Below, in pieces: positions 46,964 through 64,000 of a stretch of 64,000 nt of DNA (within the stretch, counting starts at the first letter, position 1; every line of letters starts with the position of its first letter). Made by a program: the position numbers and the translations under genes. The notes below the pieces were generated by a model. That model ran no database searches, was not told where the DNA came from, and saw nothing but the letters and a program-made list of their open reading frames with translations. This stretch comes from Klebsormidium nitens. Lineage: Eukaryota > Plantae > Klebsormidiophyceae. Location: the NCBI GenBank assembly GCA_000708835.1, contig DF237109.1, forward strand, positions 62,001 through 126,000, written 5' to 3'.

Positions 46964-49900
46964 TCATACATACAAAGAGTTTGCAAAGACGATGCCTCGT
47001 CGTATACTGTCGCTGGCCGTTTGGAACTTCTCCTCCAGGTTCTCGTCCCCGATAGTCTTGGCTGCTGTTCGTAACTGCACCAAGCACACAGCACGTCAGC
47101 GGCCAAATCGATACGGAAGACGGGGCATTGCGGCTTGCTGCATGTCCATCATACCAGTTGCGCGCCAAACGCAAAAACTTGCAAAGCAGAGCCTATCTTC
47201 TGCAGAGGATTCTTACAACAAGCAGTAGTTGTCGCAAACATATTCTGCAAGGTATTATGGCATGAAGATGCTCGGAAATAGAATCCCACATTGTCAACCA
47301 ATCTGACCGGTGATACTCACTTGGTTCAGCAGCTCGTCTAGCCTCCGCATTGCTCGTATTAGACTCCCCTCGAAGTTGTCCGTCAGCTTTATTACTTCAG
47401 AGAACTTGGCACCCTGTCGGTTGAGAAGATAAGTGTCACGAACATGACCTCATTTGGTACCATAACATGAGTAACATAGTCAATTCAGCAAAGTCTGCTT
47501 ACGCCAGATTCGGAGAGGGCTAAAGATTCTGAGCTCCGGTGGTTTAACACGGTTCTGCTACATTGGAAAAACTTTCGTTGCACGCATGTGCGCTACGGCT
47601 GACTTGCCTGACCTGACGATAACCAACAACCCGGCTTTGAATACTGAATCTTAAGAAAGACAATTTTACCACCTGGTGTCTGCAGATCCGAAGACCAAGA
47701 GAGACAGCCTTTGCCACGTGGTTGTCGCAGTTAAGAAGGACAACTTTGAGAACTCCAGAAGGTTAAGTAAGACGGATTTTTGCCACAGGTTTTTATATCA
47801 ACTTGACGGTTAAGACAGACAAGGATTGGGCCGCACCTTGGACCAGGCGTAGACTGCGTCCATGAGGAAGGGCTTGAAGCTGTCGGCATATTCGTCGACG
47901 TCGATCTCGATCTTGCACTCCTCCTGAACCGTCGCCACGTGCGCCGCAGTCTCGCGCAGCGCCGATAGCGGCTCGTGCAGCTCCTTGATCGAATTTACCT
48001 GGCAACCAAAAAGCGGGAGCAGGGATCAACATTGCTTTCATCGTTGCCAAACAACGTCTTTTGTCAGGCGGCTTCTCCGGAAGTCCTTGACTCCGGCTTC
48101 TTGAAAAGATGCATGACGAAGCCTTCTTGCATTGAGAAGGCGGGCAGCAAGTTTCGCCTGTATAAATGACCCACAAGAAAGCTCTCGCTCGTCGTCTTGG
48201 ATCGACGCACCCACTTCAAACCGGGGGCCGAAAAAGGCCTGCTGCCCCCTTCAAGGCGAATTTGTTAGATGTAAGATACCAGCGGACTCAAAGAGGTCTG
48301 CGTCTCATCACGAACCCGCCCCCAACAATGCCAAACTCATTCCTGACCACAAAGCACGCCATTGATGTCCTCCGGTTTTGCTAAGTATGCAAGTCAGAAG
48401 TCTGCTGCAGTGCTCATTCTCCAACGCAGAAGACAGCTATCATATCTACTCGATGCCTCCAGTCCACCAAGTCAAACCTCGTCAAAGAAGAACCAACATC
48501 CCTGCTTCCCACCTGTTTGTTGGACTTCTCCATCTGCATGAAGCAGCTGGCGACGGCCGCGATCTGGTGCGCGTCGAGGCGCGTGAAGACGCCGTTGAAC
48601 ATGAGCTCCGTGACCAGCAGCTCGTCCGCGGTGTCGATCTGGCACGCAGCGCGCCCTTTCAGCTGCACCACGCCGTCGCCGTTTATGTGGCCCAACCGCT
48701 TCAGCACGCGCCCGCGGTTGCGCAGCTCGTCGCGGAAGAGGTGCAGCTGGAAGCGGGGGGGTAAATGTTGATGATTGTAAGAACTCTTCACTTGAACGAA
48801 AGTAGCAGTGGTGCAATGTGCAAAAAAGTATGTGTTGCGCAGCTCGTCGTGGAACAATTGCAGCTGGGGGTGGGGGAGAGACGGGAGTCCCTTTGTTACT
48901 TTGTTTCCAGGAGACAGTGATACGAAGGGGAGCTGGTGAAATAAGTAATTCCGTTACGCAGCTCGTCGCGGAACAGGTGCAGCTGGAAGGTGGGGAGAGG
49001 AAGGGTGGATGAACACGTGAGTGCCCGTTCATTTCACTTTCGAAACGAGGAAGCTAAAATGCCAGACGTGCAGCGAGTGGTCTGGTTGCTCAGTCGTCGC
49101 GGAACAGGTGCAGCCGGGGATGAGGCAGTTTCTTCACATGATCGTCTTGCCGGTATGCAGGAACTGAAGCGCAGTACCTCAACGTTGGCTTACAAAATCG
49201 CAGCTGTGATTAAGAGTAAGGACGGCTTTCTTTTTCGACTTTCCAAGACTGCATGGTCACAGAAAATCATAGCAAGCAGCAATCGATCCGAAAAGCCGGC
49301 CCGTACCTCGACATCAGACACTCGACCAGCAAGAAAGACTCATTCTCAGGCACAGGGAGCGCAACGGCAAGAGTTCTATTTGCCAGAATCTTTTGAAGAT
49401 AACATTGAAGTTCCTCCGTTTGCTTTTTAGGGTTTCAGGGTTTCGGGTTAGGTTTAAAGAACCTAAGGCCCCTAAAACCCTAAAAGTAAGTATGCGCATA
49501 CGCTCGGGGCCCACCTGCGAGTCCGCGGTGGTTTGGAGCTTGAGCTTGGCGGCCTCCGCGTCCAGCTGCGCCTTCTTCTGCATCGCCGCGTACGTCTCCG
49601 CCTCGCTGCCAGACTGCAACATACACGGCGTCGATTGAGCTGCTTTCTGCAGTGCCAAGAACCCATCTCAGGTGGTGTCGAAACATGTGGAGGACAGTAG
49701 CGACGTAAGACCGAAAAGACCATGCAGCAAAGCAGCTCCCGCCTCCTCGTCCTCCTTCCTTTCCTCAGCGGGCAAGGAAACAACAACGAAAGAGACTAGT
49801 CACGAATGACATGACTGAGCATGAGGATGAGTGCGATCCGCCGGAGGCTGACCTTGAAAAGCGGGTGTTCCAGCAGCTCTGTCTCCCTGTCCTGCAGTTG

Positions 49901-52900
49901 TTGCACCGCGTCTAGGAACGCGTCGTCCCGAATGCCCATGTCCTCGATGGGGTCCAACCGAGGCAGGCCGTCCGGGAAGCGCTGCTCCATACTGCGCACT
50001 TGTTGTAGCACCATGCGCCGCGCCTCCGCGGGCCGCAAGTCGCCCGGCAGCGTCACGCGCAGCGAGCTGCGGCAAAGGAGCAACGAAATTGCGGGGTTTG
50101 GAAGAGCACGACTCGAAGGATTCTAAGATCAACGGCTTGGTGATGAGGTCGCCAGTTCAGGCACTTAGGATCCGACCGTTTGAGGTTGCAAGCTGGATGT
50201 ACAAACGGCATTCGTTTTCAAGTGGGCGAAAACAGGGACCATTGCGAGTGAGTGCACCAAAGAATGGGTTAAGAGGTATCGCATCTGGTGGATAGATAAG
50301 TCAGGAATTCCTGTGCATTGGGCTGCAAAACAGGAAAGCTATACTCCCAAGGTACAAGGTCCTACTTTTAGATAGTCCTCTAGGTCACTCTCCCTTGAGC
50401 CAAACACTGTCCCAACGGCTCACCTGACCGCCGTGATCTGCGTCAACTGCACGGGGATCACTTGCATCTCGCCCTCCTCCTCCGGGGAACACGGCCGCGG
50501 TTTCGGCCGTCGACTCCGGTCTACTCTCCCGCTGTCCGGCGCGCAGTAGAGCAGCGTGTCGGCCATGTAGGACTCTGCCGGGGCGGGTATCGAACCGTTC
50601 CGCATCACGTTCGCTGCCGGGGGCGTGCGCTTGACCACCGAAACGACGACGCCCCAGCCCCACTCGTCGACTCCGTCGTGAACCTGGAGGAAAGGAAGCC
50701 GTTCAAAAAGTCGGTAACCTCTACCGTTGCATGTTTGGTGTTTCAAGGGCCGTCCTGTCAGAACAGCTCCGTTCGCCTGAGTCGGACTGGGACGAAAGTC
50801 CACTGCGATGAGCGGCTTGAACCCGGTCCCTGTCAAAAGTGTCAATACATGCACCTCCCTGCCATCTTCACGCCAATACAAGCATCAAGGCGAGACACGG
50901 ACCTCGTTTCCTCCTGAGTACCTCAGACCCTAAAACTGGAAGTATCTGCACTTGAGAAAACGAAAGACCGGGCATTCCTGAAATACCTCAAGGTGCAATG
51001 GGAGTCGCTTTAAGCGTGAACGCGGTGCCCACTACCCTTCGACACTGTCGAAGAGCGCAAGTCTCGATTAGACAAGATTGGACTGGTAGGGTGAGTTAGT
51101 GCAGTGCGCTGAGACTTATGCCTAAACTTCAGTATGTGTACGCCCGTTTCCCCTCACCTGTATGAAATTCTGATAGATGTAGTGAAAGATAACAGCCAGT
51201 TAACACTAATGAAGACGGGTAAAGATACTTAAGCAAATAGGGTAGGTACACAGGTGCGGAGCGGGTGATCCTTTGGCTTAGTATTTTCAGTGAACCGCAA
51301 AATGCATACTGTTCACAGGACCGAGGATTACCTGGATGAGCCGGCCCGGGCGCATGAAGTGCAGGCACCGGTCCGGCCGCAGGACCTCGGCCATTATGAG
51401 CTTCTCCAGCGCCGCGATCTCGACGCGCAGCTTCTTGTAGCTGTCCGCGGACTCAGGGGGGGGCACCACAATCGCCGCCGACTGGCGCTCCAGTTCGGCG
51501 GCGTCGGCCTCCAGCTTGGGCCGCTTCTGCAAGACACGTGGCATCCTTTAGGTGGTGCACACGTACCGCGTTTGCATTCGGAGAGAGTCGGTCTTAAAAA
51601 AGTGAATTGAAGATAAGAGCCGTTGTGGATCGTGCGATAAGGAGAAGGTCAGCAACATACATGGCGGCATTCCACCAGTATCATGCGCAACTTTCTACGA
51701 TGCCCAGGCGAGCGCAGCTTTCGACTAAACAGGCAGCAAACGCGCCAGCAGTCAAGAGCTCCAGCCATAGTTGACACACTCAGAAGCCAAACACTCCTCA
51801 CGAACTTAACGACAAAGGGGGGTTGCATACAGGGTCGAACACAAGCACGGTGCTCGAGCACAAAAGCAAGTCGCAAGCCAGCCTGCGTGCGAGCTTCCCC
51901 TTGCAGAGATCCACACTGAAAGGGTGAACAGCACACATTCATTTTGACAGCTGTTGCCTTTGTACATTGCTCTTCGCACAATCACATCACCACCGCTATC
52001 CATAAATCCAGTGGCTCATCTTTGTCTTACGAATATCTCGCGGCGCACCTTTTCGTGGAGGAACTGCAGGAAGGAGTGGCGGATCGCGTGCTCCGCGCCG
52101 AACTGCCCGTCCGCTCGGCTCATCAGGTTCAGCAGCGTGTAGTAGCTCAGCTTGAACGTGCTCTCCAGCGGCGCGGGCCGCCCCAGCATCATCTCTTTAC
52201 ACGTGGGCATGTCCATTTGGTCATCCACCATGGTAATGGTTATGCCTTTATCGTCCTTCCCGCGCCGCCCCGCGCGGCCGCTCATTTGGATGTATTCACC
52301 GGAGGACATGTAGCGGTGGCCCTCGCCGTCCCATTTGCGGACCTGTGTGAAGACCACCGTCTTGGCCGGCATGTTCAGGCCCATCGCAAACTGCAAGACA
52401 GGAGCGGGGGCGATCAGCGGCTTGAGCGAGCCAACCAATAGACCATTTGAACGATCTCGCGCAAGAAACTGACGGCGCAATCCTTTGTGTGCTGCATTGG
52501 TTCTAGCATTGTCCGATTGAGTCAGATGGGAAAGTACTCGACGCCGTCGTTTCGAATCTTTCGGAGCGATGGATTAGAACCGAGGAATGATTGCAGATCC
52601 ATACCAAGGGTCGGCATTGCGATACTTCTTTTGGCTGCGGTGCGGAACGACGACGGAACAACAATAATTGGAAACTTGACAGAGTCCCATCAACGATGAC
52701 CCGACTGGAGCTGCAAATGTTGTCCTACAGTTGCAACCCAAACCGTCCCAAATCCCGCGTTCAAGATCCACAAAGGACCGTGTCCGTAACAAGGAAACAC
52801 ACGGCTCCAAACCTTGCCCGACAAACTCAACAGCTCAAAACCAGTGCGAAAACCTCAGGTTTGTGGGCTTACCGTTTCTGTGGCGAAGAGCACTTTGACG

Positions 52901-55900
52901 AGGCCCTCCTGGAAGAGCAGCTCCACAATCTCCTTGATGATGGGCAGCAGCCCCGAGTGGTGGATCGCCACGCCCTTCTTGAGCATGCCCAGCGCGCCAG
53001 CCACCGCGTCGATCGCGCGGTCCTCCTCGCTCAAGCACTGCGGAGTCGGGCGCGGAGTCGAGTTATTTCTTGCGTTTCCTTTTCCGATTGTCAAAGGTTT
53101 CTCGAAAGGTCGACTTTCAAGGGAGAAAGTACTCCGCGAGCAGATTGGAAAAAGAGGGAACGGAGGATGGGTGTGAACTTGGAGTGGATTGCTTCTCAAC
53201 TGTCGTTCGGAAATGGCAATACAGACAAGATACAACAGATACCCCTTTTGCAAGGGTTTTCGTTGAAAAGAACATGCTTCTTACCTGTCAGCTTGGGAAC
53301 GGACTCGCAAAACCTGAGTTGTACCCGATGTTCCTTTGAAGCCTTTGGAAAGCAGCCTCGTGTTCAAGAAGATTATGAGCTTAGTGCATCGAACAATTGG
53401 ACCAACCCAGCTGTCTCGGCGCGAGGGAACCGAGACGGACTCTATTCACCAACGCTCTTCCACCCTCACTTGCAGCAGCCAATGTCGACAACACCTCTCA
53501 AAACGCATGCAGACACACCTGGATGGCGCTGTTGAAGACCTGTTCGATGTTCTCCGCCTCTTCGGCGGTGCTGAAGTCCAGCTTGTGGGCCACGTCAGCC
53601 GCCAATAACTCCAGCTCACGCCGCGCAAAGCTGAAAACGATGACTGGGTGTAGCCGCCGCTCCTTGATCATCTGCACGAGACGGACGTCAGCGACAATCG
53701 GTACGGGGCTGCGAGGCTAAACTTCGAGGGCTATATCCACGAAAACGACGGTCTCCAAACTTGCTGTTTGAAAACGAAAGAAGACTTTTAAATTGTCAAT
53801 GAAAGGGCAGCGAGCCGTGATTTGTATGTATGCCAAGATTCACAATCGAGTACGAAGCGAACCAGAGTGTTCCGTGGTCCCTCCACTATCGACGGGGACG
53901 CCTGTTCTGAAAGGAGCGAACTGCAGAACATCACAGAACAAGGACACTTCGTCTGATAGAAGGGCTGAGAAGGGACACCGACAATCATAATGAGAACAAA
54001 CCTGTTGTCGAGCTTGAAAACGTCAAGGGGCAGGCCGACAAGCCCGCACAGCGTTGCAAGCGCTCCGCACCTTGATGATCTTGATGATATCTTTGTTCTC
54101 CGTTTTCTCGGGGGCCCCTTTCCGCTTGGGCGGCGGCCGGTCCGTGATCTTGCCCCCGTTGGCCAGCTTGCTGCCCAGCTCGCCGTCCTTGTCTTTTCCA
54201 AAGGTCGCCAAGAGCTTCGTAAAGTTCTCGTCCCGAAAGTTGCCCTGGCAGCAACGACGTGGAGGCGTGATGACAAACCTTCGTGGCAATCACACGATGA
54301 CTTGAAGGGTTGGGAAATTGACTAGATTTTGCCTTGATTCAGTCTATCATTTTCAGACTGTCAAAACCTGTAGAAACACTGAAGACCGATTGAAATATCC
54401 CATGGTCTTTTGTGGGGAGTGAGGACAAGATCTTCTACGATTTCGAAGCATGTCGAGAATGGTGACGTTAAACCAGACTTTAAACTTGCAAGAAAACGAA
54501 TGCAGGCTTGGCAAATTCCATGTCTAATGTCTAAGCTAATATCCGCCTTCTAATTAACGCGATAGTAAGATCACAGTGCCGTAGGTTTCCCAGATACCCG
54601 CCGCACCTTCTCATCCACGACGAGGTACAGCCCCGCCCCCCCAACCGGGAATGCGTAGTGCTGCAGCGGGACGGGCCGCCTGTCGGTGTAGACCACGTGG
54701 CAGGGCTTGTTGTGCACCGCGCAGATCCACTCGGCAAACTCGGTGGTGTTGGACATGGTGGCAGACAAGAAGACCATTTTGACGGCCGGCGGGAGGAAGA
54801 TGATGCTCTCCTCCCAAACCACGCCGCGCTCGCGGTCCTTCATGTAGTGGATCTCGTCGAAGATGACCCTGGAAGATTGGGGAGGTAAGGTTCGTATTTG
54901 CCCGAAAAGAAAGTGGTGGGCGCAACAGGCCAACAAAGGGACAGACGGACTATGGGAGTGAACGAGCTGCAGGTGAGCTCGTCCTTTCCAACTTGGCGGA
55001 CATGGAGATAGAAGACATAGAGTGTTACTCAATAGTGGCGCTGGGAAAAGCTATTGCATGTATGCTGTTGATCAATGGATGCGAGGCCCACTGAGAACAC
55101 TGCTGGCAAAAGTTTTGAGAAACCTGAAATCAAGTAAGTCAATGAGACGAAAAAGCACAGGCATGGCGCTGGCTCTTGTGGTGGGAATCGTGGCGATGTG
55201 CCAATTAGAAGGGGGTTCACCAAACAATCGAACTAGAGAGAAGATCAAGTGGGCACAAGTTCTATGTTGTCTTCCATTGAAGTGCCTGGTTTTGACATCG
55301 TAGAGCAGCATTTAATCAAGTGTTTTTATGCTATCATGCCTGGCAAATCAGTCTATGTCCCAATTGACCCTTTTACCCTCAACACAGTACCACCTACTGA
55401 TCCACCACCCTTCCATCAGCCTTGGCGCCCCCTTGTTCTCAAACATGACACTCCTCCTACAAAGAGGAGGCCTCCTCACCATGCCACTTCGCGCATGACC
55501 TCCGACCCCCGGTACAACATGCTCCGCATGATCTCGGTGGTCATCACGATGCACCCAGCATTGGGGGAGATTGTCACGTCCCCCGTCATCAGCCCCACGT
55601 CCCCGAACTCCGTCTCCAATTCCCTGTACTTCTGGTTGCTCAGCGCTTTGATCGGCGAGGTATATATCACTCTTTGCTTGTCCCGGAACGCCATCGCTAT
55701 GGCATACTCCGCCACCGCCGTTTTACCCGCTGACGTGTGTGCTGACACGAGCACCGACTCCCGCCGCTCGAGGCACGAGATGGACATCTGCTGAAATGCG
55801 TCTAGTTTGAAAGGGAACTCTTTGGCCATGGGCCCACTATACTGAGGGTGATGAATGTCGCCTAACCCCGCTTCTCTTTCACCGTCAGGGGGCTGGTAAT

Positions 55901-56045
55901 CCGAGGGCAAAGCCACTTCGTGTGTGCACGGGGGGGCTATCAACGGAACACTTCCGACAGCTTGCACTTTAGCGGGGGGCCCGGGGGCCTTTGCCTGATC
56001 AGCCACTCCATCCGCCTGCTTCCTCTTTGCTGCTAGACCCTCCAT
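46964..56045 (-). CDS. HEN2: Ski2-like DExH RNA helicase, exosome cofactor of the MTR4 family, HEN2-type
   Basis: [108 protein letters not shown] arch [30 protein letters not shown], ending [31 protein letters not shown] and the N-terminal [19 protein letters not shown] resemble recalled Arabidopsis HEN2 more than MTR4. Confidence 0.9.
48717..49125 (-). repeat. Four tandem copies (117-131 nt period) of a 3' splice site plus the first ~30 nt of a HEN2 exon
   Basis: cgcttccag|ctgcacctcttccgcgacgagctgcg (functional, 48746); cacccccag|ctgcaattgttccacgacgagctgcg (48863); accttccag|ctgcacctgttccgcgacgagctgcg (48982); tccccgg|ctgcacctgttccgcgacgac (49113, AG lost). Confidence 0.9.
49425..49485. repeat. 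Short head-to-head telomere-like (TTTTAGGG) inverted repeat in a HEN2 intron
   Basis: ttttaggg tttcaggg tttcggg ttaggtt taaag aacctaa ggc ccctaaaa ccctaaaa. Confidence 0.7.
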
Positions 56046-56460
56046 GGCTGCAGCCTTTCAGGGAACCCCTTCCTCTCAATCGCCGTTGGCACAATTCTGA
56101 TGTTCTCTGAACTACTGCTGCCCTATAATACCGTAGAGTCTATAATAGAGTTCAACCTCCCAACTTCCAAGTTCAAGGGAGAAGAGGAAGAAGGCCATGC
56201 AATTTTCAATCGACTCCGCTAGTGACGGAACCCTAGAAGTAGCCAGCCTGGTAATGGTGTCTCGGGCGCGGGGTGGTTGAAGCAAACGGCAATTTTGACG
56301 TTACCAGTGCCGACAAGAAGGCTGCCACTGGTCACTGTTCATTGTGCCCCGCATTGCCATTGCCAACGCATGCAGCATTGCAGGCGTTCAGTCCCAGCGG
56401 GCATTGATGAGGAAGGAAGGGTAGCTTCTGAACAGCAACTTTGATATTTTTGTGAGAGGG
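56046..56460. promoter_or_regulatory. Likely bidirectional promoter between HEN2 and SPOUT1 (415 nt between start codons), with a telo-box-like AACCCTAG
   Basis: Divergent ATGs at 56045 (-) and 56461 (+); aaccctag at 56229-56236. No TSS data. Confidence 0.45.
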
Positions 56461-59400
56461 ATGGCATCTGAGGATGAGAGGAATGGTGGTGCAGTGGGCC
56501 CAGAACCACCACAGAAGTCCAGCCACGGAAAGGCATCAGATTCAGCGTTGCGTAAGAAGAAAGGAAGTAGCCACCATGCGGAGCTAGAAAGCGGAAAGTT
56601 TGAAGAGAATAGCAGAAAGAAGTCTTCGGCAGGGAAGGTGAAGAAGAGGAAGCATGAAGCAAATGGGAAAGATACGACGGAAGCGGTGGGTGACCATGAA
56701 AAGAAACACAAAACGCCCGTAGAAGATAGTCAGAAGGTTAGGAAAAGTCCTGACACCAGCAGGGGGCCTCGACATCATGTAAGCGAAGGGGAGGCTAGTG
56801 GTGGCAAAGTTGCAAAGGATAAGAAGAAGAAAGAGGCGAAAAACCTGAAACAAAAAGCGGTCAAGAATGCAGCAGAGGTTGCCACCAAGCCGGATACTCA
56901 GAGCACGGGTCATCAAGGAAGGGACTGGACGGTGTCGATCGCAGTCGCTGGGTCTATCGTGGACAACGCGCAGTCGCTTGAGTTAGCCACCGCTGTGAGT
57001 GGTCAAACTAATGAATTGGCATCACCTCCATGAAGAACTTGTGAAGTTTCCAACTGCCGTTGCTGAGTGTGGGGGCTGAAGCTTGAAGCCCTTTCTCGTC
57101 ATTCCACTGATGACTGTCTTTTTCACACACCCATGTCTTTTCAGCTCCTGTTTCATCCCTTTGCAGCTGGCGGGCCAGATTGCTCGAGCTGCGGCCATCT
57201 TCTGCGTCGATGAGGTGGGGAAGCTGTAGTTTTCAAATCTTGTTGGTCGCAGGTTGTTGAGCAATTCAAACATTCCCCCCACTTGGAAGTCACTTACTTA
57301 TGATCAGCTGAGGGTCAGGCACATCAAAGTTAGAGATATGGGGGCTATCAGTTTTGCACTGCTTGCCCATACCTTCTGTTCTTATTCCAAAATGGAGAGC
57401 ATCCAGCAAGCGCAGGGTACATTATACCACCGCAGTCTGAAGTCAAGCTCATGGGATGTTTCCGAGACCTATGCCGGGCACCCACCTATCTATTCTAGTC
57501 AGCAGATCTGAGCACTGCCCTGTTTGTCAAGCATCAAACTGAAGTTTACATTGATCCAAAGGTTACCTACCAGTACAAGGTAGTTGGAAAGGGCTTCCGC
57601 TGAGCAATTTCCACTCCCACTCAACACTCTTCTTAAAAACGGCTTCTTCAGCTGCCCCGACAAACTGATTGATGGCCCCACTTTTCCGCTCCCCAGGTGG
57701 TTGTATTTGAAGACGGCGACGATGACCCTGGCCGTCGGGCTCCCCGGTGGCGCCGGGGCGAGGCGGGCGATAGTGGGGCAGTGTTTCTAGCCAGGCTGCT
57801 GCAGTACTGCGAAACTCCGCAATACCTGCGACGGCACCTTATTCCCATGCACCCAGACCTGCGGACAGCAGTAAGTGGCGCGCTTCTTGAGTCGTGCCCA
57901 GAGTCCCGTGCTCATTGTAACTCGTAGTAATTCTTATCCAAGTCCTGGTCGGTTTCAGATTCACTCACATGCGGCTCTCTAGCTCTTCAGTAGACCGTAC
58001 TTCACACGGTCGAACATCGATCTGTGGTCGATGTGTCCTGAAAAGCTGGGATGTTATGGTAGACTGATCCTTTTCTTCCGCCAAGTTGATCTGCATAGTG
58101 CTGCTTGCGAGACAAGTATTCACACTGCTGCCTAAGCCTTGTACAAGCAAGAACTTCCTAGCCCGATTCCTGGCATCCTACCGAGATGAAATGTGGTTCG
58201 ATGGTTGGCAGATGAAAAGGCTCCTCTGCACATCTACGCTCGTAGCTGCCAACACTAGAGTTTCCTCTTCAAACGCCGCATCGTTGCTCGTCCCGTTCAG
58301 GGTTTGCTGGCCCCTCTGGACGCTCCGCACCACGCGCGGGCTCACGAATGGATCCCCTATCGTGAAGGTGAGTCAGCTCCACCTGCGGCCGCCCGTTACG
58401 ATTTTCGCCTCAGCTTATGCTTGTGTTAGCATTCCATCAAGAGCCGAACTTGTTCGAGGCAATGCGTTGTTCAAAGAAGGAAACAAGAGTGCGTTGGATA
58501 CCTCCTCCGGCAAGGTAAAGTCTGCATTTGTATTGGGTTCGTGTCTCGTTAAAAGACGACAGATGATTGTTGAGACCTGAGGCGTCTGGGTCAGGAAGTG
58601 GCACTGGTAAACTTGCCTCGACTTCCAGGATCATAACAGCGATGGTTACAGCGAGAAGTAAACCGGTGAGAATCAGAGCAAGTAAAGCATGGAGAGCGCC
58701 CCGCACGGGGAGGAACTTTGGGCCCTGAACAGCACTGCGCCTGGTTATCTCACCGGAGCGCGTCCCTGTTGTGTTGCAGGGGTGGTGGTCGTGAAACCGA
58801 GCGCCGGAGGCAAAGCCAGCGGGGGCAGCGGCGCCCTCGTCAACGTGGGGCTGCAAAAAGTGCGCTCTCTTGCCGAAATTTGTATTTCTGGGCCGTAGTT
58901 CGACCTTAAGTCAAACCACTCATACGCTGGGTAAAGAGCTTTGATCCCCGCTGCCGCTCGCGAGGAGGATGTGTCGGTCGTCCTTGCGGCCGTTTGGTTT
59001 GCTTAAGTTCCTCTCGAGTTCCACGGCAAAATAGCACGCTCACGTCACGCCTTGTTGCAGGAGGTTCGCATCGCGCAGTCCCTTGAGGCGGGCCTGCGGG
59101 TCACAATGGCTATGGGCGACTCGCGAGAAGCGCTGGACGCGGGTGAGAGGACACCGGACGTTCGCAACTTGCGTCTTCTGCGCAACTGCAACGTCAATTC
59201 TCTCTCGAGATGTCAGCGTGTATTGTTGAGAAGCACGTCAAGGGTGCTCAAGCGAAGCGTGGTCGGTCAACGTGGATAACTGATGACGTCAGGGCTTCGA
59301 GACGAGACGCTCGAAGTCCAATTCACTGCCCATCACAACCAAAGGTCCTTCATTGATTCGCTAATTCGCGCTCGCCAGCTTCCTCGCAACCCCGGCTCAG

Positions 59401-61098
59401 CATCATCAATCAAACCTTTTGGGTTCAAGAGCTTTTCCGTTCAGAAGCGATTCCGTTTTTACAGCTTCTACTTCTTCTTTTTAACTGGTTTGCTTTGCGC
59501 CCCACAGGGCGGCCGCTGAGTGCCGTGTCTCCGTCGGAGCCCCGCGAGCGGCTGGGGCTGTACTGGGGCTACACCGTCCGCCTCGCCAAAGGCCTCAGCG
59601 GCGTGCTCGCAGAATGCCCCTACGCGGTGAGCCTCATTGTTCCGCTGTTCGTCGTCGCTAGACGCTGGAGACGTGCAGTTGGCTCGTCTGCTTCCTAACC
59701 CTTTGAAGCTTGGGGAAGTCAAACGCAAACGGTGCTTGTGTTGCTGTCAGTCTCCTATGGTTAGTTTTTAGAAGGTTCCACATTTACCAGATTTCCGCGT
59801 TTGAAGATTCTGGAGAGCTTCGCAACATACGATATTGTTTCGTCTCATCCTCGCTGTATCTCTCACTATAGGCAGGCTACGACTACACGCTGGGGACGTC
59901 CGAGCACGGAGAAAAGCTCCAGAGCACGGAATTGACACTGCCCGCCTTCAAGTGAGCTCGCGCGCCTTGATTTAACTGTGCGGTGTCAAACAGGGGGCGC
60001 TGCTGACAATCTTCGTTTGTGTGCGGACGCTTTCGATTCCCAACAAACTCAAAGCACGTTTTTCATTCTCTCGCCACAAAAATGAAGCTGTGTCTAAAAC
60101 TGCGCTTGGTTTGGACGTGGAAGAAAATGGTCACAAGAAGCAAAAACTCGACCTGTTGACGTCATGTGACGCCGTCGTGACCGAGACACAAGCTCTTTGG
60201 TGCGCAGGCACTTGCTGATTGTGTTCGGGGGTTTGGCCGGGCTCGAGGAGAGCACCGAACTGGATGGCGATATCGAAGTAAGGCGTTTTTTCCTTGCAAG
60301 TTTCCCAGCCAAGTGATGTCTCGGACGAAGTGCAATTTGTCCGCGATGGCTGCCAAATGGGCCTCACTCTGGCTTACGGTTTTTTTCGGATGGCGTACGT
60401 GCCCTCGTAGCAAGATCGAGCCGTTCCCGTTGATGCAACTTGGTGTTAAAGCTTGGTAGGCTTCACGTACGTTGTTTGCGAAGTGGTCTCAGTCGCGTCA
60501 CACAGAGGCCCATCAGATGAGGCGGCTCTTCACGTGGGGAAGAGCCGTGACTCGCTTTTATCCAGACTACTTTGCGGTGCGGTGTGAAATTCCGAACAGC
60601 TGTGCCAGGGCAGCCAGTTCTACCGCCCATATTGCAGCCGGGTTGATCTCCAGCGCCGCGTGCAGGTGAAGGACACGGCGGCGCTGTTCGACAGGTACCT
60701 CAACACGTGCTCCGGCCAGGGCAGCCGCACCATCCGCACAGAGGTGAGTATGCGCGGCACCGCAAGGCATGTGTTGCATATGTATATGGGCTCGTGCCAA
60801 AAAGCATAAATTCCCTGCCGGGGAGCTATTTCCAAGCTGTGTGTTGGACTATCTGACCCATCGCATCGTCTCGGCAACCAGCATTGAGCATTCTTTTGGT
60901 GCTGAAAGACTCTGTACATTTCACCACTGAGATAGAGTGCAAAGCTGCACACTGGGTGAGCAGTCTTTCCGGTTTTCCCGGAGGTCCCTTTCCTGGTTGA
61001 GCAGCCGTCACTGACCCCCGCTCGTCCTCTAACAGGAGGCGCTGCTGATTAGCCTGACGTTTCTTCACGAGCCCATCCAAAGAGCGGTTGGCAAATAG
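56461..61098 (+). CDS. SPOUT1: SPOUT1/C9orf114 (CENP-32)-family SPOUT methyltransferase with a Lys-rich N-terminal extension; about 11 exons
   Basis: WTVSIAVAGSIVDNAQSLELATA|LAGQIARAAAIFCVDE|VVVFED, FLARLLQYCETPQYLRRHL, GLLAPLDAPHH..EWIPYREG, ALVNVGL, GLRVT, GLYWGYTVR, CPYA..GYDYTLGTSEHG, HLLIVFGGLAGLE, FDRYLNTCSGQGSRTIRTE|EALLISL; TAG at 61096-61098. Confidence 0.93.
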
Positions 61099-62048
61099 TA
61101 AGAACCCCACAGGACGAGATCTGCAAAGAGCTCAGGCGGCGCGCCGCCTGCTTGTTGACCGGGAAGCATAGCTGTAGGGTCGGTTAACCGGGAACATGAG
61201 GGCAGCTGTCAAGGTACCCCGGAAAAATACCATCCTTAACTTGTTAGTGTCAGCGCAAAGAAGGGCGCTCGAGGACGCCATGCGTCAACTGCGGACAACG
61301 CATGCAGGCTCTCAATCACAATGCTAATTTGATGCTACAATCAACGCCACTGACTGACTAAACGTGAACATGCATATTGTCGCGAATTAGTATTTCGATG
61401 GAGTTTTGTTGAAGGCCGGTGCGGTACCCCGGCATGACGTGACCGCTGCGGTGCACCCGGCCGGGTTCAACGATCCAACCAATCATGTGCAATGCAATTA
61501 TTATATAATGTGGACCAAACATGCCCGCCATGCACTTTCATACTGCGTACTGCCGCGTGTGTCTTCGCGCAAATTTGAGCCTTGGATGACGGTTGCAGTG
61601 TTTGTAAGTGAAGTTTGCAATGGTACGTCTTTTATAAATCTATCTCATGCCGCTACAGGACGGTGCTCTCCAACGTTTTGCAATCATGTGGACTCTGAGT
61701 AGATATCTTACACAAATTTTCTGATAACGTGTAATCGAATCTGCTATCACTTACTTGTCACTTCAGTGAGTTTTCAAAGCAATACTGAATCTGCTTCGAT
61801 TCCTGATCAGATATGTCGAAACTCAAATCAAAGGAGACTACAGTAAAGGATACTACTAATAATGGATTCACTGCGGCGCTGCAGCAACGAACTTAGTGTC
61901 ATGGTCAAGTGACCATAGGTACTAGCCCGGCTGCTTCCAAGCTAGTACGGGACACGTCGAATACGTTGACAACTGCCCATATACTAGTGAGTTCAAGCAT
62001 ATGTACACCACAGTCTTCATCCCAAGTCAAGCAGCTGCGCCTTCATCC

Positions 62049-64000
62049 TCAGCTCGCCGGTTGCCGCCGGCCCAGGGACAAGGTCCGCTTCCACGGCTCT
62101 TGCACTTGTCTGACCGTCCACTTCACCTTGTGGGGCAGCGTCTGCGAGCGGTAGCGCTCCTTCCGGTCCTCCAGCGACTCGTGCGGCTTCTCCACAATGT
62201 CCAGGTACTGGGCCTCACGCCAGAAAAAGTAAAAGGCAACAGCTGCGCCGGGGCCCACCACAAGGGTCGCCGCCGCAAAGAGCGCGGCAGCCTGGAGGCC
62301 CTCTTGAACGAGGGGGATCATGAGAAAGCCTGTACGGAATCGCATTGCGTCAACATCCATCGCCTTCATGACACCTCACCACCGCGAACAATTTTCTTGT
62401 CGTGTCCGCCATCGCTTTTGGACAGGAAGAACGGGTAGGCGTGTTGTTCGAACCACTCGAGAGACTTTGATCGAGCAGGTTCCGATCGTCACACCAGCAC
62501 TCCTCACCCAGATTTCTACTCGAATCTCAAATGCAAATGTACACTGATCAGCCAGCTTAGACAGTTGCTCGGCACACAGATTCCGACAAGACTTGCCGCG
62601 CCCACCTGCCCAGAGCACGATCTCGTCGACCCAGATGAAGAGGATGGTGTGCAGGTGCCCCTCGTAGTGCATCAGCACGTTATACAGGCTGCTCACGATC
62701 GTCGGGTCCTTGATCACCGCAATGATTGCATACATGTGCCAAGCGATGCACCCGCCCGCAATGATGAGCAGCGAGTTCATCGCCGCGCGGTGGCCCTTGA
62801 TCTGCTCCCTGTCAATGGCAGCAGCAACGGTCGTGTGCTTGTGCATCTTTGGCGGCCCGCGGCCGAAGGGGCTCCAGATGAGCTGCCACAGGAGGGGCGT
62901 GGTGAAAAAGAGCGCGGTGTTCCAGATAAACTTGGCCTTGTCGTGGCTCAGCACCATGCCCGCCAGGAACGGGATGAAGCCCACTATGACCACCACGCAC
63001 GCAGCCACAATGCGCGCCTGGTGGACGCGCTTCGGCCGCACGTCGTGGTCGAACTTGAGGGCGGTTGACGCGACCTGCAGGAAGGAAAGCTGGCTCGAGC
63101 GCGGACCAATGGCCGGGGGGGTGCACAGGTCCCGACTGAGCCCTCTTAGTAGAGAAATTCCGCAGGCGGAGGCTCTGGAAGCGAGGGCTCTGAAGAATGA
63201 CAGCTCATCTAGATGCAAGAAAAAGGTTTCAGCACTACGGTGGATCCAATTAGCGGCCGCCTCGGACATTCACAGCCGTCGATAGAACCATCCAGCACTT
63301 CCAAGGGCGGGTCTGGTTGCGACCATTCTTGGCCCGCTTGCGGTGCGCACCTTGTTGAAGCTGAGGTAGGCCACGATCCAGACGAGCGGCGTGATGACGT
63401 ATGACCCGATGACGAGCGCCACGACCACGACCAGCGTGTAAAAGTGCACGAAGAAGTTGGTGCGCGCGTCCACGCGGGACGACTCAATGGCGCCCGCCAT
63501 CTGCCAGCCCAAGTGGGTCGTGATCTGCAAGAGTGGCAGGCAGGGGCTTCATCAGATTGGACTGGTTTCATGTATACTGGGAATCGGCAGACAGATCCTG
63601 CCGTGATAGTAAGCCTACTCGATCAATGCAGGATACAGATTCCGCACCTCTTACCCTCAGCAAGCAGCAATCATGATACGATATCCAAACAGTATGACAA
63701 ATCCAACTATGGTGCTGTGCCAAAGATCGCACACAGTGCATGGCCCTTCACAATGACTACAAAGAGCCGCTACGAGCAGACGACAGCAGAGCTATACTAT
63801 GACAAAAGAAAGAGAGAGCAACAGGAGTCAACAACTCTTACAAAGTATCCCAGCGGAATGATGCCGTACGTCTCGCTGTTGGCCATGGTCTCAAAGAAGG
63901 GCACAACAAAGCCCAGGAAGGCGTCAAACCCCAAGATCCCAACGTAGTGCGGCTGTAAAAGAACAAGGTGCATGGTAAGCAAGCAAAAGGAGGTAGCGCA
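62049..64000 (-). CDS. Multi-pass membrane protein resembling the fungal AscI/PaxA/AtmA membrane terpene-cyclase family; 5' end lies beyond the window
   Basis: Exons 63952-63842, 63524-63351, 63074-62606, 62329-62049 give 344 aa in frame with many hydrophobic helices. Motifs: HYVGILGFDAFLGFVVPFF, AIESSR, GSYVITPL, VGFIPF, TPLLWQ, AWHMY, LFIWVD, VVGPGAAVAFYFFWRE. The CDS is well supported; the family call is from recalled motif order. Confidence 0.7.

Follow-up and report, generated by a model that had tools for sequence, protein, structure and literature searches.

Structure of the gene and its transcripts

At one end of a 64,000-nucleotide (nt) stretch of the Klebsormidium nitens genome (GenBank assembly GCA_000708835.1, contig DF237109.1, positions 62,001 to 126,000 of the forward strand; this whole stretch is called the window, and its own numbering is used throughout) lies a minus-strand gene whose four GT-AG exons encode residues 102-445 of KFL_001600220, a protein of 445 amino acids (aa) that is annotated as "hypothetical protein" and is referred to below as P0001. 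A search with exon c matched this entry at 100% identity, and tblastn placed residues 102-445 on the same four exons, which are the last four of a gene of at least five and make up roughly its 3' four-fifths; residues 1-101, which supply a disordered N-terminus and the first of the membrane helices, are encoded past 64000. P0001 stood in for the joined exons in searches and structure prediction, and the exon DNA itself was concatenated solely to compute GC and third-position GC. The locus is a genuine nuclear K. nitens gene for a polytopic membrane protein, and its parts, in the direction of transcription, are as follows.

63953..64000, minus strand: 3' end of the upstream intron, acceptor ttttacag/CCG at 63953/63952; the 5' exon or exons for residues 1-101 lie outside the window
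63842..63952, minus strand: exon a, residues 102-138, PHYVGILGFDAFLGFVVPFF...; acceptor cag/CCG, donor TTT/gtaaga; D111 at 63925-63923
63525..63841, minus strand: intron a/b, 317 nt, GT..AG; joint 63524/63842 found in contigs from four runs
63351..63524, minus strand: exon b, residues 139-196; carries the ESSR motif, in which E152 (63485-63483) is followed by R155
63075..63350, minus strand: intron b/c, 276 nt, GT..AG; joint found in contigs from four runs
62606..63074, minus strand: exon c, residues 197-352 and the first base of G353 (ends in phase 1); covers membrane helices 5-8; D346, in the FIWVDEI motif, is encoded at 62627-62625
62330..62605, minus strand: intron c/d, 276 nt, GT..AG; partly retained in assemblies; joint found in four runs
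62049..62329, minus strand: exon d, coding part, residues 353-445; encodes QEG, the GPGAAVAFYFFWRE motif (E391 at 62216-62214) and a hydrophilic C-terminal tail; stop at 62051-62049
61581..62048, minus strand: probable 3' untranslated region; its lower end is approximate, inferred from contigs of 729-769 nt, of which 333 nt fall on 62000-62332 and the other 400-440 nt or so lie below 62000

The stretch is present in 20 public runs from seven studies, which we only guessed to be RNA, and many of these contain about 63% of its sampled words, a share that is roughly the exonic fraction of the stretch. When contigs of four runs (four studies) were compared with positions 62000-64000, they displayed exactly the three predicted joints and left the window at 63952 into an upstream exon encoding ...IANLIKEHFN, which corresponds to residues 92-101 of P0001; exon depth in these contigs is 10-100 times intron depth. 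Because spliced contigs of this kind could not come from the genomic locus as DNA, the gene is expressed and spliced. A protein from a Klebsormidium subtile transcriptome (P0002) has 81% identity to KFL_001600220. A first-pass annotation of the window, drawn from the sequence before any searches, had read four in-frame GT-AG exons here and had assigned them to a polytopic membrane protein of the alga itself, not of a contaminant; the joints seen in the contigs, together with the predicted helices, host-like third-position GC content, introns and synteny described below, bear out both assignments.

One of the introns behaves differently from a fully removed one. Separate unspliced contigs carry intron 62330-62605 at about 6-15% of exon depth in all four runs, which suggests that it is partially retained in transcripts. 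Such retention would put everything after residue 352 out of frame and remove the helix that bears the GPGAA...RE motif.

A fold shared with a family of Ascomycota

An AlphaFold model built with a 37-sequence alignment (predicted local distance difference test score, 81.5; predicted template-modelling score, 0.79) places about nine long membrane helices across residues 60-400, with D111 in predicted helix 2 and D346 in predicted helix 8. Searched against the PDB with Foldseek, the model found nothing over a generic helical background, and VIA-align, which is independent of Foldseek, reached a best Z of only 5.2 among 48,161 chains, again on generic helices. The top structural match in the ESM Atlas is an Ascomycota cluster of 361 aa labelled "hypothetical protein" (template-modelling score 0.67/0.81, 330 residues aligned, root-mean-square deviation 2.8); the row directly after it scores 0.17-0.30, and all later rows stay at 0.33 or less.

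A language-model feature search with P0001 led to the same place, returning this cluster and two sister clusters (359 and 384 aa) at 0.92-0.94. The best match shares 226 of 256 features (0.94), and 21 of the 30 neighbours belong to the same Ascomycota set. A chytrid relative of the algal protein (P0021), used as an independent feature query, recovered the same three clusters at 0.94-0.95. Farther out, at 0.79-0.80, the neighbours include fungal clusters of 336-364 aa bearing DUF2834. As judged from the predicted model, the K. nitens protein shares its fold with a large family of Ascomycota proteins that are about 360 aa long and have no Pfam domain. Even if the link to the fungal cyclase AscI that is discussed below should fail, what is left is a clearly delimited orphan family that has a confident model and no match among solved structures.

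A sparse eukaryotic family

Relatives at the sequence level were gathered by HMMER, using a profile of the three closest proteins against 1.84 billion representative proteins at a threshold of E<=1e-3. This search returned 33 relatives, 13 of them at 1e-10, with homologue sizes of 328-372 aa. The named ones comprise K. subtile, two proteins of Spirogloea muscicola (P0004, which we call paralogue A, at 1e-51, and P0016) and the chytrids Rhizophlyctis rosea, Chytridiales sp. JEL0842 and Boothiomyces sp.; the remainder are Logan or JGI sequences on eukaryotic contigs, where neighbouring genes include IF4E, exportin-T and O-FucT. Identity between the K. nitens protein and the chytrid members is only 21-25%. 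By these matches the protein belongs to a sparse eukaryotic family that is found, among named members, in streptophyte algae and chytrids. The first-pass annotation had allowed that homologues might prove widespread across Viridiplantae, and the HMMER search returned neither a land plant nor a named chlorophyte; the gene is absent or unrecognisable in land plants.

Other searches placed the protein in no described family. Pfam and NCBIfam scans of the exons singly gave only noise, the full protein matched no family in either, and P0001 had no Pfam match at E<=1, whether to the ABA4-like DUF4281 or to other membrane enzyme families. The three-sequence profile found no match in a sequence search of the PDB. 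In word-index searches of proteins, exon c, the three-sequence profile and a 15-sequence profile all returned only the near relatives P0001-P0003 and no named fungal enzyme; the literature yielded nothing relevant on the locus tag or on DUF2834.

Some members of the wider set differ in gene structure. Three ENA metagenome contigs (L009:780-2475, L010 and L011) hold 191-aa relatives of the C-terminal half, preceded by same-strand open reading frames of 225 and 70 aa. We had considered these relatives of about 190 aa as bacterial half-size homologues and dropped the idea, as the upstream same-strand frames resemble further exons; they are probably the last exons of intron-containing eukaryotic genes. 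Two other homologues, P0037 (L001:10001-11008) and P0012 (L003:1950-3002), are intronless and have a very high GC content at third codon positions (GC3) of 0.79-0.93, on eukaryotic contigs of moderate GC where the adjoining genes are fragmented by introns. An internal duplication relating the N-terminal and C-terminal halves of the protein was also tried and rejected (hhalign probability 1.3%).

Conserved motifs and acidic residues

The family consensus reads DxFLxxxxPFF, ESSR, GxSxxxPxLWLPxY, PxLxPLxW, GH, WH, FLxVD, EEG and GPGAAxxxYxxxRE, an order of motifs that the first-pass annotation had already listed; the acidic residues that it named (D111, E152, D346 and E391) likewise lie in columns conserved across the family. 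F121, G378 and E391 are invariant in the alignment, and E152, R155, G178, W187, P256, G363, Y386 and R390 are nearly so. Counted over 15 homologues, D111 is kept in 10, and E152 and R155 are each kept in 14. The D346 column holds Asp in 12 of the 15, Glu in one chytrid and Thr in Spirogloea paralogue A, and the spacing from D346 to E391 is a strict 45 residues in every one of them. Paralogue A keeps an ESSR-like motif, EEG and GPG...RE despite a Thr-Leu pair in place of D346-E347; from its sequence, this copy may be non-catalytic or re-purposed.

Genomic setting and inheritance

An 85-kb JGI metagenome contig carries an orthologue (P0003) with 58% identity and with introns at the same protein positions (about 86, 186 and 326 of P0003). 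In this relative, the gene sits between a SPOUT-type methyltransferase gene (L008:589-1655), whose last exons match window positions 60200-61100, and a HECT gene. The membrane-protein gene is inverted between the conserved methyltransferase and HECT flanks in the two algae.

A maximum-likelihood tree (LG+C20) of 22 full-length members, unrooted and without Dikarya, sets the chytrid sequences apart from the rest (89/90) and unites Klebsormidium with Spirogloea A (100/99). Spirogloea B groups with other sequences (82/81), and the tree therefore implies two old paralogue lines. The shared intron positions, the microsynteny and the Klebsormidium-Spirogloea clade argue that the gene is an old resident, passed down vertically from the common ancestor of Klebsormidiophyceae and Zygnematophyceae or from further back, with recent acquisition unlikely. 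Since the tree is unrooted and built without Dikarya, an ancient transfer in either direction is possible. The gene also looks host-like in its GT-AG introns and its GC3, which is 0.86 as against 0.65-0.77 in neighbouring exon open reading frames.

The readable flanks in the window hold two genes. One, for a SPOUT/Methyltrn_RNA_3-type methyltransferase, occupies 56452-61100 on the plus strand; it and the membrane-protein gene face each other tail-to-tail, their 3' ends about 0.5-1 kb apart. In the relative with 58% identity, the methyltransferase gene lies head-to-tail upstream instead. The other, a multi-exon gene for a SKI2/MTR4-like DExH RNA helicase, lies at 49800-56045 on the minus strand, with a DEAD-box match on the exon at 55479-56045 and further helicase-like motifs among the open reading frames. 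These readable flanks contain no gene for a prenyltransferase, polyketide synthase (PKS), cytochrome P450 or flavin monooxygenase.

A candidate epoxide-opening cyclase

To our knowledge, enzymes of the AscI, AurD and IdtA type form a recently recognised class that has no solved structure and is known only from ascomycete secondary-metabolite clusters. AscI (ascofuranone), AurD (aurovertin), CtvD (citreoviridin) and AstD are fungal membrane-bound epoxide-opening cyclases or hydrolases (PMC6486709, PMC8827043, PMC12312803), and IdtA/PaxA, JanA, PtmA and DesA are tetrahydropyran-forming cyclases of indole-diterpene clusters (PMC12038925). AscI has eight transmembrane helices, is described as "without any Pfam motif" and shares 27-29% identity with CtvD and AurD. 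Five of its residues, D61, E103, D296, E353 and D355, are essential; D61, D296 and E353 are common to AurD and CtvD, and E103 is reported not to be conserved in them (PMC6486709). PaxA/IdtA is a helical integral membrane cyclase similar to AscI, with an active site between the C-terminal helices and an essential D279, and is reported to have no clear relationship to PaxB (PMC12038925).

We drew the likeness between these enzymes and the algal protein only from published descriptions and residue numbering. By numbering only, the conserved acidic columns of the homologues of about 350 aa fall at approximately D57-71, E97-112, D261-296 and E306-341, or more narrowly at about D60, E100, D273-296 and E318-341; in the chytrid protein P0021 these are D71, E111, D296 and E341, and in K. 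nitens they are D111, E152, D346 and E391. The first three positions would fit AscI well, on a mapping made by number alone.

The account we favour, to which we give a probability of roughly 60%, is that the locus encodes an expressed algal membrane protein that has the fold of an ascomycete family, is a putative relative of epoxide-opening cyclases and has been vertically inherited. The parts of this account differ in strength. The matching Ascomycota family quite probably contains AscI, AurD, CtvD and IdtA/PaxA, which would make the algal protein a homologue of that group; that the algal protein itself works as a cyclase or hydrolase is less probable than this homology. We infer the identity of the ascomycete family with AscI, AurD and PaxA, any enzymatic activity and the substrate by analogy. 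The first-pass annotation had called the gene AscI/PaxA-like, and what stands of that label is that the nearest large family resembling the protein, in fold and in features, is fungal; the AscI or PaxA name is not carried by the Ascomycota clusters concerned. Its further suggestion of a fused flavin adenine dinucleotide (FAD) monooxygenase fell away once the full protein was in hand, as P0001 adds only a disordered N-terminus and one more helix, and the housekeeping genes in the readable flanks speak against the edge of a biosynthetic locus.

In enzymes of the AscI/AurD/CtvD/PaxA type, buried Asp and Glu residues protonate an epoxide on a lipophilic substrate, and a nearby hydroxyl or water then attacks the epoxide to close a tetrahydrofuran or tetrahydropyran ring. 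By analogy, a lipophilic epoxide of isoprenoid, carotenoid or oxylipin type might be bound between the C-terminal helices of the algal protein, with D346 (helix 8) and D111 (helix 2) as the candidate acid, and the near-invariant E152-x-x-R155 and R390-E391 pairs could hold the helix bundle together.

Weighing the alternatives

Several observations count against kinship with the fungal cyclases. AscI, AurD, CtvD and PaxA were compared by description, and the Ascomycota clusters that match bear no label beyond "hypothetical protein"; at the level of sequence, the three-sequence HMMER profile found no ascomycete protein at E<1e-3. The neighbours of the gene are housekeeping genes, and neither an epoxidase nor a prenyltransferase or PKS is adjacent. 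Spirogloea A, the closest non-Klebsormidium relative, has its Thr-Leu pair (residues 338-339) where D346-E347 would stand, and the proposed catalytic Asp is therefore not universal. The C-terminal spacing from Asp to Glu is 45 residues in the algal family as opposed to 57 in AscI (D296 to E353), a difference of 12 residues. Among the acidic residues of the algal family E152 ranks second in conservation, whereas its presumed counterpart in AscI, E103, is reported not to be shared by AurD and CtvD. A rival explanation is that the fold is indeed shared, but that the ascomycete family is not that of AscI, AurD and PaxA, or that the algal branch is a non-cyclase (perhaps a transporter of small molecules or lipids, a membrane scaffold or an enzyme that does not act on epoxides) whose charged pairs would serve structure or transport. 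We regard this explanation as unlikely, yet as one to be taken seriously: it draws on the absence of a functional name among the matched clusters, on the lack of a biosynthetic neighbourhood, on the loss of the key Asp in Spirogloea A and on the better conservation of the ExxR and RE motifs than of the buried Asp residues, and the high exon depth and spliced contigs across several studies would suit a constitutive, housekeeping-like gene. Recurrent weak matches to DUF2834, a domain of unknown function, in 8 of the 37 family members point the same way. It has to contend with how closely the published descriptions of AscI and PaxA fit (about eight transmembrane helices, about 360 aa, no Pfam family, an ascomycete source and an essential C-terminal intramembrane Asp), with acidic positions in the 335-361-aa homologues that nearly coincide with AscI numbering, and with structural searches that gave no transporter match over background.

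The vertical component of the favoured account competes with a recent horizontal transfer from a fungus to Klebsormidium, a fungal derivation that the first-pass annotation had raised. Most other members of the family are fungal, its occurrence across Viridiplantae is patchy and includes no land-plant match, and both Klebsormidium and Spirogloea live in soil or subaerially, all of which would accord with such a transfer; it is nevertheless improbable, given that identity to the chytrid proteins is so low, that the tree splits algal from chytrid sequences and joins Klebsormidium to Spirogloea A across two streptophyte-algal classes, that the gene has at least four spliceosomal introns at positions common to the relative with 58% identity, and that microsynteny is kept and codon usage resembles that of the host. 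That the locus is a contaminant of the assembly, or a set of open reading frames aligned by chance, is scarcely credible: we found nothing in favour of this, and it would have to accommodate exact GT-AG spliced transcripts in runs of four studies, a position between algal housekeeping genes on one contig, synteny in a related alga and an orthologue in K. subtile.

The K. nitens protein adds a new member, from an unexpected part of the tree of life, to a superfamily of membrane proteins that is poorly described and whose large fungal branch quite probably contains the epoxide-opening cyclases. If that is so, the existence of an expressed, conserved, unclustered relative in streptophyte algae and chytrids would make the fold far older and wider than fungal natural-product clusters. 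The divergent sequences would help to define the catalytic core (D111, E152/R155, D346 and the GPG...RE motif), and the algal relatives of land plants would be expected to hold a lipid or terpenoid chemistry, derived from epoxides, that is still unexplored. A more far-reaching proposal, which we offer tentatively and consider possible though doubtful as a whole, is that subaerial streptophyte algae near the origin of land plants, Klebsormidium and Spirogloea, keep a membrane epoxide-opening cyclase of the type with which fungi form tetrahydrofuran and tetrahydropyran rings, that this unclustered gene makes a cyclic-ether lipid or terpenoid, that the pathway was lost in embryophytes and that its origin lies in early eukaryotes or in an ancient exchange with soil fungi.

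Comparison with known systems

The resemblance to known proteins is graded. The Pyr4/AscF/PaxB cyclases and the ABA4/neoxanthin-synthase-like DUF4281 proteins are also small and polytopic and use acid catalysis on epoxidised isoprenoids, which is an analogy only; the algal protein differs from them in having no Pfam family match at all. DUF2834 (PF11196) is approached more nearly in sequence, through weak but recurrent near-full-length matches on the last three helices; in P0003, for example, residues 271-364 match profile positions 4-95 of 96. All such scores lie far under the gathering threshold of 22.9 bits, with a best E of 0.019 among the 37 members; the profile gave no match to P0001 and only 10.2 bits (E 0.94) to P0003, and the domain covers only about 96 positions.

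In relation to PaxA/IdtA, the conserved Cys66 of IdtA has no verified counterpart in the alga and there is no indole-diterpene gene context, whereas algal D346, in helix 8 of about nine, would occupy a place analogous to that of PaxA D279. The AscI/AurD/CtvD/AstD group differs from the algal protein in that the algal gene has introns, encodes extensions of about 60 residues at the N-terminus and about 50 at the C-terminus, stands apart from any epoxidase, PKS or prenyltransferase gene and occurs in algae and chytrids. The likeness to this group lies in the all-helical polytopic membrane architecture, in a core of about 340-370 aa without a Pfam motif, in conserved Asp and Glu residues, predicted to be intramembrane, at positions that are comparable by numbering, and in the fact that an ascomycete family of equal size gives the algal protein its best matches in fold and features.

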